DNA from: Macrostomum lignano
Lineage: Eukaryota
Assembly: GCA_002269645.1 (NCBI GenBank)
Contig: NIVC01002099.1
Location: 22,710-86,709 of the forward strand
Direction of reading: 5' to 3'
DNA: 64,000 nucleotides
In this document: positions 13,605 through 30,300 of the stretch, piece after piece
Layout: every line of letters begins with the position of its first letter
How positions within the stretch are numbered: the stretch's first letter is position 1
Made by a program: the position numbers and the translations under genes
Notes under the pieces: model-generated
Seen by the model: the letters and a program-made list of their open reading frames with translations, nothing else
Database searches by the model: none
What the model was told of the DNA's origin: nothing

Positions 13605-15043
13605 TTATTTTTCTTTTTTCTGGTTCTGCTGCTGCTGTTGGCTCTGCTGTTGTTGCTGAACTGCTTTACCAGCTGCTCTCTGCTCAGCCGGAGCCAGGAA
13701 AAACTTCTTGTCCATTCGCACCAGCCAAGAGGACACCTGCCGCTTATCGGCTGAATTTTTGTGCGCCATTTTGTCATTGACTCGCTCGATCATGGACACG
13801 ACATCCTCATTCTTACCAAACTGCTGGAACACCGAGCATAGCGAAGTGATGAATCGAGACCCCTTTGACCCCTCTCTCGCACTCGTCTCTAGTGGCACAG
13901 TTGAGTGCGCCACAATGACGTCCTCGCATTCAGGCAGAGGTTCGCGCTCGCATTGCTTGTCCGACACACCGACACTATGGTTCCGACACACCTGGAAAAT
14001 CAGCAGCTTCGGTTTATCGGTTCTTTTTCTGGCAAACTTTTGTAGAATATCTTTTTCTTTTGCATAATCATCGTCGCATCCGTACAGGTATCCTACTATA
14101 CCGTGAGTCATCAGTACAAGAATAGCAACGTCATCTTTTAACTCTAAATCATGTATTTGTTTCCCTGTCAGATTGGTTCTGATTGAAACTTTGAATCCCA
14201 ATTCAGTGAACACTTTTAACAGTCTCTGAGTGTCTTTCTCGGAACCCAAGCGATTGCCATGTCTGCCGAATATGAGATTGTTGATGATGAGCACGCGGGT
14301 GCTGGGATCGGGAGTTGAATAGCTTTGTTTTTCATCTGGCTGTGTCAGCTTCCACAGTGCCTCGCTGCTGCTTTTTGTCCCTTCACTACTAGAGCATTCC
14401 GGCACGGGTATTTCCGGATCGACTGTGGCTGGATCGACTGTGATTGCACGGTAAAATTTAGCCAGGCCACATTTTTTGCAAACTTTCTTCGATGACGATT
14501 TAGGTTTGTCTCTGCAGCGGACGCACTCTTTGCAGTTGACGCAGATCAGTGGTTCATGACTTGCACTGTCTTTGCACTTCTTGCAAGTGCAGTCAAAACC
14601 TTCCGAACCGACAGCACAAGAGCACAGCGTGACTGGCTCTGAATTATCAAATTTAGCAAGAAGTTCAATTATTTTTTCCTTTCGCTGCTCATCATCAGTT
14701 TTAATCCAAACGCCAAGTTTATCATCCTTTTTAAATTTATCATCTTTTTCAAATTTACTTGCGTTATCTAGCTCGTAGCTAGCAACTACAACTGTAAACT
14801 TTGAAGTGTCGTCTGGTGCTGTCTGAAAGTCTCCATATTCAGCGTGCACTTTCCATCCATTTGCCTCCAGAGCCATGCGGAGTCCGTCAATTTTCTTCTC
14901 AGTTTGCTTGGCAAGGATGAGAGCCGTTTTTAATGGTTTGAATCCTAAAATTTTAGACAGAATTACTGTAGATGCGAATCAACAAAGTTCTGAATAAAAT
15001 TAAATTTTGCCTTACGTTTTTGGTGATAGTGGCTCTGATGGCA
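13605..15043 (-). CDS. Caspase (C14A-like, predicted active) with N-terminal alpha/beta domain and Cys-rich linker; main exon 14944-13605, probable micro-exon 15043-15016
   Basis: p20 motifs RVLIINN, NRLGSEKD, LMTHG (His), FQVCRN (Cys); p10 motifs STVP..SAR, GSRFI, KKFFL. Phase-1 acceptor ttttag|GA TTC extends the ORF upstream of Met-14876 (FKPLKTALIL). Confidence 0.85.
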
Positions 15044-15397
15044 CTGAAATGAAATCAACGGCAAGGTTCAAAAAAATAATTTATGCTTACTAGTGTAGAT
15101 ATAGGAAATTTTCGTTGAAAATGTGAGATAATTTAATTTTATCTGGCTAACTTTAATCTGTTTCTACATGTTAAACATTAGTTTTTCAATAAATCTTCAT
15201 CTCCAATACTGGCTCATGGAATATTTTCGAGTATTTGCATGACTGCGCATATGACAGCTACTGCTCAATTCTATATGGGTAGCAGCTGTGATTTTATGAG
15301 TTCGTAAGTGATTTGATCTGTACTCATCTGAGCGCCATTATGTGTACCATATCTAACGAAATGTGGTAATACACACTTGTAAAACAATATAAAGTAG

Positions 15398-27025: not shown

Positions 27026-27347
27026 ATCTGAAATTTAGAAGTTTTATAAAGTGACTCGGGGTATTCTCATGTATTAACTTATTGAAAATTTTCAAACTCG
27101 AATTTCACATTGTCAAACTCAACCGTCACGTTCCAGAAAACAATACCCAATTGGAGACCCCATCATCCAGTATAGTTTTAAAGCATTCAATAATTTATTA
27201 TTTGAACTGTATGAACTGCACAAGCAGTCGAAAGGAATTTCATCATATGAGCGTAACGCTACGCTTGCAGGATACGAGAATACGCTCGTATTATCATTTC
27301 TACAGAAGCGTTTGGTAACTTCTGCAAGCCTAATTGGAACAATTCTA

Positions 27348-30300
27348 CTAACCTTCTTTTTCTGGCGAAGGTTTTCCTTTCGGATTTTTTCTCTCGTGCG
27401 GCGGCTGCTCCGCTTCTGTCTTCAAACTGTGGTCTGTCTTGCACAAGAAGAAGTTTCTGTGCGTTAGCCATGTCCATCGTGGCTTTTCATCGAAACCATC
27501 CATTGAGGGGTGGTGAAATAATATGTTGACTTCGTTGATTAGTGAAACCACGTCCTTACTATTGGCATAATTGTAATATGCAGTACAGATGCTTTTGACC
27601 ATTTCGCTGCCAGTTTCACCGCGACGATGCTCAGTATACCTGCACGTGACCAGGCCAGCTTGGTTGTGATGTGATTCATCTGGATCCATGGGTATTTCAA
27701 GATACTGCGCCAGCTCCCGGCAATTATATGTGATATTCGTCCGTCCAACGTCCGCGTTTTCAGTGCCTCCAGTGGATTCTTGCTCACGACCTTTTATTCG
27801 TAAGTTGAATATCACGAGCTTTGGAGCTGACCGATAGCCAATGTTTTTTAAAGCACCGATAATTTCGGCTTCAGTTACTGTTGAGCCGTCCGAGCACTCA
27901 ATTTTACCGTCTTTTTCAAAAGCAGTGATGACGAGAATCCACAGGTTGTGATGCTCCTTAAACTCTTCAGCCGTACGAATCAGCTCGCTCGCCTTCAGGT
28001 TGTTAAATTGCACTACACCAAACAGCATGTTCTCAAACAAGTAGCACAGTCGGTCACTGTCTATCTTTGAACCTTCGAGTGCGTTAGCGCCACCGGTGGT
28101 CACGCAATTGACAACAAGAGCAGTTGGTTCGCCATGGCGCTCATAGTAACCCATTTTATCTTCGTTTTTTGTTGCGTCTGGCTTCATCTGCTGCAAATCC
28201 TGAGTTCCGAGCACTTCTGAGTCCTTTTTAAGATAATCTCTACTTTTCTCATTAAATCGGCAAGGCTGTCGAAAGCGCATGAATTTGGGTGTGCCGTATT
28301 TGAGGTCAACAATCTCTTCTCCCTCGATCGTAGTACTGATGGAAGTTTCGAATGATTTTTTACGAATAATTGACCCGATGCATTTCGTCTGCCAATTATG
28401 AGTTTGATGTTCCTGCAAGGACTTGAAAAAATGTTCGATCCGATCAGCCACTGCAACTTTATACAAGCAGAAAATGTTTTTGTATTTTTGTTGGTAGACG
28501 CTCTCAGAAAAGTCAACCGAATTATCGAACGACCGGTTGCTGTCAACCTCACAGTAGACAAGCAGGCAGCGCTGCGTTTTGGAGTCTTTAATGGCTTCGA
28601 GAGTAATCTGTAAGCTCAGCGAATTCCCCATTTCCTCATCATTCACGACAACAACAACTGAAAATCTTGTGCCCGAAAGACGCTCGATCAGCTGGTTTAG
28701 CTGGAGCTGACTGGAATCCGGATTCGAGGAAAAGCCGCAGCTTTTAATGAATTCAAAATATTCATTTCCGGCTTTTGCTTCAGGAGATTCCGAAGACAAG
28801 TTGCTGCTGAATACCGCAACGCAGCGTTGTTCAACTGAAATGCAAAACAGGTGAAGCTGCGGTAAAGCGTAAGCAGTACGCACGGTGTCACAAACTCATT
28901 GATACGCTTGTAACTAATTTCTACCTGCTATCTTACTAATCTTACTATCTTACTAATTTCAGTGTACATCCTGAATTTCTAATCACAAAGAAGGTTCAGT
29001 TTGTTCGGTGCGATGCTACCCAACAATGTCCAATTTCCCGAAGCAAAAATTTCCAATTATGTTTTTTATCTCGCGCTTGCAATTCCATTCTCGCAGGTAC
29101 ATCACTGTAGCGCTGTAGGTTTGAATGGGTGATACGTTGTTCCTTCACTTTTTATTGCTGGTTGCTTGCCATGAGCCAATGAAAAAATTAATAATTTACA
29201 TTTCACAGGTTGGAAAATATTGATTATCTCCTTTCTGCTCAAAAAAGGCTCGTCCACACCGCTATCAACGAGTAAAAAATGTGTGTGATTACATGACTGA
29301 TGTACTCTACATAGATCAATGTACAATGCACACTGATTTACCCGTTTGATGGCAGTGCGGACTGGCCTGGCCTCATGAATATGCTCTCGACACAAAGTCT
29401 GGGAAGTAAAGCCTCGATTGAATTTGGATAAAAACATCCCTATTGTGGCGGCCTGTGGTCTGCGATTGGTGCAGCGCTCGTGCACCGGCACTCTCAGCTA
29501 CCCCCAGCCGTACACATAGAGGCCAGATTAGGTTTGAGGCGTGCATGAGAGAGAGAGAGAGAGAGAGAGAGAGAGAGAGAGAGAGAGAGAGAGAGAGAGA
29601 GAGAGAGAGAGAGAGAGAGGAGCAACTGCAAAGCAATATATGGTAGCGATGAAGAAATATCTTAGGCTCTGAGAAGCCAATGCAGTCTGCGGATCCCCAG
29701 ATTGCTGGCATGCCAGGAAAAATGCCAAGCAATGCGGCCGTCAGCGCGTTTGGCCGTCAAGAAAGCTAAGCTTTCTTTCCATGGCCATAAAATTCACGCG
29801 AACAATACACAGCAGACGCCCACACAAATACGGAGCTTTCTTAGAAAAAGCTTTTTCGCCACATTCTTCCGAACCAAATCCGAGTTTCTTGTTTCATTCT
29901 AACTTGGCAATGATAATGCGCAATGGTATTGCATCACAGTCCCTGGTGGCATATTACAAAACAGAAGACTCTATTTGAGGCTTTAGCTATTTAGTTAGAG
30001 TAGGTGAGGCTGCGTGTGTAAAAAGCATTTAAAGAGCTTCAACTAAATCCAGAGTAAGGTCGACAGACTACCTATGATAATGAATAATACCTGACAACCG
30101 AGTTCAATGCTACTCGTAAACTCAAATTAATTCATACTTACCCTGTTGCTCCTTTTGTGGAGAGCTATCTTTAGGAATCGAGCTCTGTGGATACGATTCC
30201 ACATTTTCACCTGCAATAAAATAAACATCTTCATGATTTCATGCATCATTTGAAACCAGAATTTGTTATTCGAGCAATCGATGCATGATTAAGGATTCAG

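Follow-up and report, generated by a model that had tools for sequence, protein, structure and literature searches.

A predicted flavodoxin-like prodomain may take the place of the death fold in four tandem caspase-family proteins of Macrostomum lignano

Introduction

Caspases are normally recruited and activated via death-fold prodomains. In the case of cFLIP(L) and caspase-8, a pseudo-caspase regulator is encoded beside its caspase, and tandem DEDs and FADD are used. Here, we describe a locus of the flatworm Macrostomum lignano in which pseudocaspase and caspase genes also lie side by side. It is contained in a stretch of 64,000 nucleotides (nt) of the genome assembly GCA_002269645.1 (contig NIVC01002099.1, positions 22,710 to 86,709 of the forward strand; referred to as the window and numbered from its first letter) and comprises four caspase-family genes on the minus strand, G1, G2, G3 and G4. 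The N-terminal domains of the encoded proteins (G1n to G4n, preceding the caspase domains G1c to G4c) are the subject of this analysis. As with cFLIP and caspase-8, a dead paralogue would carry the same type of prodomain as its active tandem neighbour, which makes that system a plausible model for G4/G3 and G2/G1. However, the M. lignano N-domain is predicted to be of the alpha/beta type and is unrelated to the DED.

Prodomains other than death folds have been described. The prodomain of mammalian caspase-16 is similar in BLAST to its own caspase domain, has equivalents of the large and the small subunit and goes back to an exon duplication (Eckhart et al. 2025, PMC12198278). In both cases an active C-terminal caspase domain follows a non-death-fold alpha/beta prodomain without catalytic residues, but the M. 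lignano N-domain has no detectable caspase similarity, is half the size and belongs to single-exon proteins. Caspase-X of the coral Acropora millepora has two caspase-like regions, the first inactive and the second a typical, active caspase domain (Moya et al. 2016, PMC4715348). Its domain order corresponds to the pseudocaspase-then-caspase gene order in M. lignano, and a possible in-frame splice from G4 to G3 would give the same order in one protein. The two domains of caspase-X are, however, both recognisable and part of one protein, whereas in M. lignano a gene of its own (G2, G4) encodes the recognisable pseudocaspase, and the N-domain cannot be recognised as a caspase. Flatworms are without FADD, and the parasitic groups are also without DED caspases; unusual caspase prodomains of lophotrochozoans include ANK in parasitic flatworms, a kinase-like domain in M. 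lignano, Z-binding and PARP (PMC11463336). There, too, CARD or DED is replaced in a lineage-specific clade, in the same phylum and once in the same species. Those prodomains are recognisable Pfam families, whereas the N-domain described here matches none and is absent from that survey.

Results and discussion

Four paralogues in two pairs

All four proteins have the same layout: an N-domain of ~100-150 amino acids (aa), a linker of 50-85 aa with Asp residues, and a caspase domain. Read along the coding strand, the genes and their spacings are G4 (pseudocaspase), 320 nt, G3 (active type), ~8.6 kb, G2 (pseudocaspase), 354 nt, G1 (active type). The account that we prefer, and to which we would give an even chance, is that the N-domain is a lineage-restricted, fast-diverging, flavodoxin-like prodomain that was inherited by the four paralogues and serves as an association or regulatory module.

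Among database proteins, the M. lignano hypothetical protein BOX15_Mlig027753g1 (P0001), the orthologue of G4 with 84% identity, is the one close relative. On the contig of P0001 lies a second copy of the locus, L001 (NIVC01001342.1:60817-90283), in which the four genes recur in unchanged order and which is collinear with the window. The long open reading frames (ORFs) found by translation define the following main exons and N-terminal domains, position 13605 being the first base of the G1 stop codon and 28834 the first base of the G4 main exon.

28834 to 27348, i.e. 27348..28834, minus strand: G4 main exon with N-domain, linker and predicted pseudocaspase domain (ORF; Pfam 9.8e-07; orthologue P0001)
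28386..28826, minus strand: G4 N-terminal domain, RCVAVF ... HQTHNWQT (motifs; collinear with G2n; Chou-Fasman alternation)
25554..26917, minus strand: G3 main exon with N-domain, disordered linker and caspase domain predicted to be catalytically competent, SHG/QSCRH (ORF; Pfam 3.3e-28; AF2; Foldseek)
26472..26912, minus strand: G3 N-terminal domain, predicted as beta1-alpha1-beta2-alpha2-beta3-alpha3-beta4-(short beta)-beta5-long helix (AF2 secondary structure)
15398..16740, minus strand: G2 main exon with N-domain, linker and predicted pseudocaspase domain; in-frame ORF open to an ATG at 16846 (ORF; similarity of the C-domain to G1 and G4)
16340..16738, minus strand: G2 N-terminal domain, predicted (beta-alpha)5 (AF2 model; Foldseek)
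13605..14944, minus strand: G1 main exon with N-domain, Cys-rich insert, linker and caspase domain predicted to be catalytically competent, THG/QVCRN (ORF; Pfam 2.2e-32; dyad and S1 Arg against caspase-8; TTTTAG acceptor, phase 1)
14643..14930, minus strand: G1 N-terminal domain, KTALIL ... ELLAKFDN, ~96 aa with 4-5 predicted strands (motifs; Chou-Fasman alternation only)
14466..14642, minus strand: insert with 11 cysteines between N-domain and linker, in G1 only (sequence reading)

The caspase domains

The Pfam matches of G1, G3 and G4 given above are to Peptidase_C14; G2 has no match to Pfam, its caspase domain included. Smith-Waterman shuffle tests gave z values of 5.5-37 for all pairs of caspase domains and of ~10-10.7 for the C-domain of G2 against G1c and G4c, and the caspase domains of the paralogues are only 20-30% identical to each other. 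In an alignment with a bird caspase-8, G1 (THG/QVC) and G3 (SHG/QSC) have kept the His/Cys dyad and both S1 arginines. In G4 the His is replaced by Phe and the Cys by Arg, in G2 the His by Glu and the Cys by Arg. Judged by these residues, G2 and G4 are pseudocaspases and G1 and G3 are catalytically competent. The exchange of Cys for Arg in both pseudocaspases, one in each of the two pairs, suggests the duplication of a two-gene unit.

AlphaFold2 (AF2) was run on two proteins, full-length G3 and the G2 N-domain, with input alignments of 7 and 3 sequences, respectively. In the G3 model, the p20 part of the caspase domain has values of the predicted local distance difference test (pLDDT) of 76-88, and Foldseek matched the model to structures of caspase-3/-7 with E 5e-12 and a template modelling (TM) score of 0.72. 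The intersubunit loop of G3 between beta4 and beta5 (25900-25960, residues ~325-341) is short (RHRGAEGNVVCKIPANT) and has no Asp. Classical Asp-directed p20/p10 processing therefore seems impossible, and G3 may be activated by dimerisation only.

The N-terminal domains match no known family

A preliminary description of the locus, made from the sequence, had noticed that no all-helical death fold is apparent in the N-termini. This was borne out: the four N-termini matched no Pfam family at E<=10, CARD, DED, Death, TIR, TIR_2, Response_reg and Peptidase_C14 included, and both AF2 models are alpha/beta. The ORFs upstream of and between the genes on the gene strand have no Pfam match either and measure at most 46 and 76 aa between the paired genes; a hidden death-fold exon is therefore unlikely. 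An exhaustive phmmer search with the G3 N-terminus over 1.84 billion representatives returned only the 60-residue G3 fragment that is part of P0001, and at this level the G3 N-terminus is an orphan. Among PDB sequences, the N-termini found nothing except a designed Rossmann 2x3 protein at E=0.35 (G2/G4 profile). Word-indexed searches were dominated by P0001: it was the only protein returned for full-length G3, a search swamped by the (NADN)n tail, and the four-protein alignment A1 retrieved P0001 and one bird caspase-8 only. The same search with the caspase-domain alignment A3 was empty, missing even P0001 and P0002, and was treated as uninformative. A literature search on the gene identifier gave no match.

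The similarity of the N-domains to each other is not significant. BLASTP gave best E values of 0.14-0.19 in a four-sequence database, the z values of the Smith-Waterman shuffle test ranged from -1.7 to 1.8, and a comparison with hhalign, for which each profile combined the window sequence with that of L001, yielded probabilities that were all <=2.5%. A lack of mutual profile similarity was named in the preliminary description as an observation that would refute its proposal of a shared N-domain with a possible second caspase fold; at sequence level this proposal is formally refuted, although profiles of 1-2 sequences each are too thin to be decisive. MAFFT placed the supposed strands of the four N-termini differently with each input set (A1, A2, A5). 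These contradictory alignments were not used as profile or AF2 input; instead, the collinear alignment A6 of G2, G4 and P0001 was used, in which G2n and G4n are collinear over ~150 residues with 18% identity and have LL..C at strand 4 in common.

Predicted structure and fold class

A common strand-helix pattern had been proposed for the four N-termini on the basis of sixteen short motifs. All of these (16/16) were found in the minus-strand translations where they had been placed, and in G3 and G2n they fall on strands and helices of the AF2 models. The part of the proposal without statistical support is the mutual resemblance, as no pair of N-termini is significantly similar. The G3 model has strands (E) and helices (H) at E13-20, H27-43, E47-53, H59-63, E74-80, H85-98, E105-110, E119-122, E127-132 and H136-159; in the G2 N-domain they are at E2-7, H13-21, E25-29, H32-41, E47-53, H59-72, E79-86, H89-101, E108-112 and H123-134. 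For G3, the mean pLDDT is 57.6 and the predicted TM score (pTM) 0.48, with a pLDDT of 50-65 in the N-domain and of ~25 in linker residues 159-209, ~50 residues that are predicted to be disordered. For the G2 N-domain (model mb8ea57fb93c0), the mean pLDDT is 56.4 and the pTM 0.52, again with local values of ~50-65. In G1 and G4 an alternation of alpha and beta was seen with the Chou-Fasman method, a crude one that agreed with the AF2 secondary structure in only 57-66% of the residues. Runs of at least five hydrophobic residues, compared with shuffled sequences, were enriched in G4 (P=0.0016), the values for G2, G3 and G1 being 0.13, 0.32 and 0.46. Taken by its sequence, the strand/helix pattern is statistically weak. 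With low confidence, the models point to a generic flavodoxin/CheY-like alpha/beta domain.

This was the fold class that the preliminary description had mentioned as the alternative to a caspase fold, and Foldseek indeed placed the G2 N-domain model there, if weakly. Among the best 50 matches, response-regulator receivers and flavodoxins prevail (E 1.8e-3 to 5e-2, probability 0.9-1.0, TM up to 0.66, identity 8-17%). Neither a clan-CD protease (caspase, metacaspase, gingipain, legumain) nor a TIR chain is among them. The full-length G3 model, searched against PDB and BFVD, matched with its caspase domain only, apart from low-probability matches to two-Rossmann-domain (GT-B-like) structures. At low confidence of the AF2 models, G2n has the alpha4 of CheY, whereas G3n has no helix between beta4 and beta5.

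Could the N-domain be a true CheY-type phospho-receiver, or a TIR-type signalling domain, that senses a ligand or a modification? Receivers are the best Foldseek matches of G2n, the predicted (beta-alpha)5 order is that of CheY-like receivers and flavodoxins, and both TIR and CheY have this fold class. But the acidic pocket of receivers is absent: neither an Asp-Asp after beta1 nor an Asp, a Thr/Ser and a Lys after beta3, beta4 and beta5 is common to the four sequences, which largely refutes the CheY version. A flavodoxin loop for flavin mononucleotide or a GxGxxG motif was not found in the N-domains, and the Pfam search at E<=10 and the low identity to the Foldseek matches argue in the same direction. 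Since the receiver pocket and the flavin loop are missing, the resemblance is one of fold class and not of membership, and we regard a true receiver or TIR domain as hardly credible, although a very remote relation to TIR is conceivable in view of the common fold class.

The preliminary description had favoured another idea, a second, degenerate caspase fold. In this case the N-domain would be a p20-like caspase half-domain, derived from internal duplication, that acts as a pseudo-subunit or as an intramolecular dimer partner. The caspase fold consists of a six-stranded sheet of the order 2-1-3-4-5-6 with an antiparallel beta6 and with alpha4/alpha5 after beta5, and comprises ~230 aa. The parallel 2-1-3-4-5 sheet is common to flavodoxin-like and caspase folds, with TIR and CheY in the same fold class as the former, so a truncated caspase would resemble the models. 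In the G3 model, N-domain and caspase domain are similar in the order and spacing of their elements (start-to-start distances from beta1 to beta5 of 34/27/31/22 and 36/28/37/25, respectively), neither of them has a beta4-beta5 helix, and N-terminal inactive caspase domains have precedents in caspase-X and caspase-16. Against this stands that the AF2 models of the N-domains have five main strands and no equivalent of beta6 or alpha5, at 100-150 aa and thus half the size of a caspase domain; that G2n, like CheY, has a helix connecting beta4 with beta5; that hhalign probabilities of N- against C-domains are <=2.5%; and that collinear shuffle z values between them are <2. The hallmarks of caspase-16, BLAST similarity and exon duplication, are both absent, and the N-domain of G3 is ~50 poorly predicted residues away from its caspase domain, in a model of low pTM. 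Together with the Pfam search, in which C14 was not matched, and the best 50 Foldseek matches of G2n, in which clan CD does not occur, this leaves a second caspase fold unsupported, and we consider the half-domain quite improbable.

Two candidate traces of caspase ancestry were rejected. One is a resemblance between AVLVVHSDS in G2n and the beta5 motif DVIVAHSTVP in G1c with z=4.6, which pairs beta3 of G2n with beta5 of the caspase, is out of register and has no extension; it is marginal, with a Gumbel estimate of ~0.04 after 28 tests. The other is a relic of the catalytic dyad. Strand 4 is followed by a Cys in three N-domains (G2n, G3n and G4n) and strand 3 of G2n ends in a His, but only G2n has both, and L001 has not conserved the His of G3n (TTRHRD in the window versus TTYRD in L001).

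Divergence between the two copies of the locus

A flank with POLQ (47079-54357) is 99% identical between the window and L001, as against 94-97% for the caspase array (13605-28863). The window is therefore another copy of the M. lignano locus, either a haplotype or a recent duplicate, and these values mark the caspase array as a place where divergence or gene conversion is concentrated. The window has an extra ~15 kb compared with L001, including a 4.6-kb satellite of 25-nt units and a truncated duplicate of G3:

41283..42212, minus strand: G3', linker and caspase domain of a G3 duplicate, without N-domain (92% aa identity to G3)

G3' has an intact dyad and no ATG, and is part of this ~15-kb insertion or duplication that is absent from L001.

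The ratio of nonsynonymous to synonymous substitution rates (dN/dS) between the copies is 0.6-2.3 in N-domains, linkers and caspase domains alike. G1n has 84% aa identity to its L001 counterpart at a dN/dS of ~1. Identity is mosaic: in G2, the N-domain is 100% and the caspase domain 89% identical to L001. Such values are compatible with a relaxed constraint as well as with diversifying selection accompanied by gene conversion. On the other hand, no ORF is interrupted in either copy and G1 and G3 have kept their catalytic residues, which argues against long-standing pseudogenes.

This bears on the possibility that there is no conserved domain at all, and that the N-regions drift fast under weak constraint in a gene cluster that decays or evolves neutrally, with a pattern that any moderately hydrophobic sequence would show. 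The dN/dS values in all parts of the genes would be expected then, as would N-termini that are not significantly similar, hydrophobic runs that are enriched only in G4, and a low AF2 confidence. Moreover, the start of G1 is disturbed, the truncated copy G3' exists, G1-G3 are unannotated in GenBank, and among the proteins searched none derived from a transcript was found. However, four ORFs of 423-511 codons have stayed open in both copies despite the low identity of the paralogues, which speaks for long maintenance, and every catalytic and S1 residue is kept in G1 and G3. The splice acceptor before strand 1 is conserved in position and phase, the N-domain of G2 is unchanged between the copies, and its pTM points to a compact fold. 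We consider it unlikely that a conserved domain is absent.

Gene starts, splicing and gene pairs

All four main exons start at a TTTCAG or TTTTAG acceptor after a pyrimidine tract, in phase 1, and strand 1 follows 3-6 codons further on; the main-exon boundaries of G3 and G4 are exactly those in the GenBank model P0001. The long ORFs of G1 and G3 have their first ATG only after strand 1, so that translation of this strand depends on an upstream mini-exon. The elements concerned are given below, the slash marking the exon boundary.

26995..27027, minus strand: G3 first mini-exon with start codon, MPAGPSGFQP-G (splice signals; ATG kept in L001; exon in GenBank model P0001)
15015..15043, minus strand: candidate for a G1 upstream mini-exon, TTTCAG/.../GTAAGG, without ATG (splice signals)
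27347..27356, minus strand: donor-like site GAAG/GTTAGT overlapping the G4 stop codon (in-frame join to the G3 mini-exon; junction used in P0001)

The G3 mini-exon (33 nt, with the start codon directly after the acceptor) is corroborated by P0001. The one of G1 has no ATG and differs from the L001 copy (~28560-28590) by a 2-nt indel. M. lignano has a 35-nt spliced leader ending in ATG, and neighbours on the same strand that are <1 kb apart are classed as operons (PMC8629364). If the spliced leader were joined to the G1 mini-exon, its ATG would be in frame in L001 and out of frame in the window. With 320 and 354 nt, the spacing between pseudocaspase and caspase gene is below the 1-kb operon criterion in both pairs.

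The donor-like site over the G4 stop codon joins the G3 mini-exon in frame, and the junction in P0001 reads ...QEKKE/MPAGPSG. In G2, a donor-like sequence AACG/GTAAAT (15418-15427) is located 9 codons before the stop codon, in phase 1 as are the acceptors of all four main exons. Since the phases of donors and acceptors match, in-frame pseudocaspase-caspase fusion transcripts are possible.

A model for the N-terminal domain

According to the account outlined at the beginning, the four genes would be tandem paralogues of one Macrostomum-restricted caspase subfamily, arranged in two pairs of a pseudocaspase followed by a caspase. Their N-domain would most likely be a three-layer flavodoxin/CheY-like alpha/beta sandwich, attached by a flexible, Asp-containing linker. 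The simplest account of the four N-domains is that they descend from one ancestral prodomain and have diverged beyond sequence recognition. We infer this common descent because the genes are in tandem, their C-domains are homologous, the proteins are single-exon proteins with the same acceptor phase and position and the same layout, and G2n and G4n are collinear. By analogy with CARD and DED, contacts made by the N-domain would join copies of the active caspase (G1, G3) to each other or to the pseudocaspase of the adjacent upstream gene (G2, G4), and this association would control proximity-driven activation, as the DEDs do for caspase-8 and cFLIP.

Several observations weigh against this account. 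The homology of the four N-domains is without statistical sequence support, and their dN/dS indicates weak constraint or diversifying selection. The first strand of G1 may be untranslated in the window, and this G1 may be N-terminally truncated or disabled. None of the best 50 Foldseek matches of G2n reaches E<=1e-3, and both AF2 models, with a mean pLDDT of 56-58, are of low confidence and based on 3-7 sequences. AF2 is able to yield idealised Rossmann-like folds from any alternating pattern. The evidence for the fold of the N-domain is weak at present; what the analysis does show is the layout of the proteins, their catalytic status, the lack of known prodomain families and the orphan nature of G3n.

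With respect to CheY and flavodoxin, the N-domain would be similar in its predicted order of strands and helices and in the nearest Foldseek neighbours of G2n; the differences are the lack of a phospho-acceptor pocket and of a flavin site, the low identity and, in G3n, the missing beta4-beta5 helix. If the flavodoxin-like prodomain exists, it would be a further replacement of CARD or DED, this time without a recognisable family and common to active caspases and adjacent pseudocaspases. The locus would then encode a self-contained, lineage-specific module of activation or regulation with the logic of cFLIP/caspase-8, possibly tied to a fast-evolving locus of the immune type. This would not establish a new principle, as non-death-fold prodomains and N-terminal inactive caspase domains have both already been described.

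It is tempting to go one step further and to combine a relic half-caspase N-domain with expression of each pair as a unit, either from an operon resolved by the spliced leader or by splicing into an in-frame fusion. This would yield a chain in which up to four alpha/beta modules of caspase origin form their own pseudo-dimer without an adaptor, the idea of an intramolecular pseudo-dimer coming from caspase-16. If true, caspase activation would be free of an adaptor in an animal lineage that lost FADD. We consider this combination very improbable.

Other features of the window

The cysteine-rich insert of G1, with the pattern CxC...CxCxxC...CxxCxxCxC...CxxC, is 97% conserved in L001. It matches no Pfam family at E<=10 and resembles a zinc-binding module. 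Between the two gene pairs, a C2H2-like zinc-finger ORF (22688-23287, plus strand) adjoins a (GAT)n array (23468-23843); this ORF, which L001 has as well (20232-20933), may belong to a mobile element.

The window is rich in microsatellites and satellites, and repeats are found on both sides of the array. Satellite units of 21 nt are located at 3440-4529, 5339-6561 and 6950-7769, (TGAG)n at 8150-9075, a 57-nt unit at 9174-10284, and units of 40 nt and 25 nt at 11226-13273; the 25-nt unit of the insertion, with 187 copies, extends over 4.6 kb at 33822-38408. Such repeats also account for the ORFs listed at 12236-13277, which are not genes.

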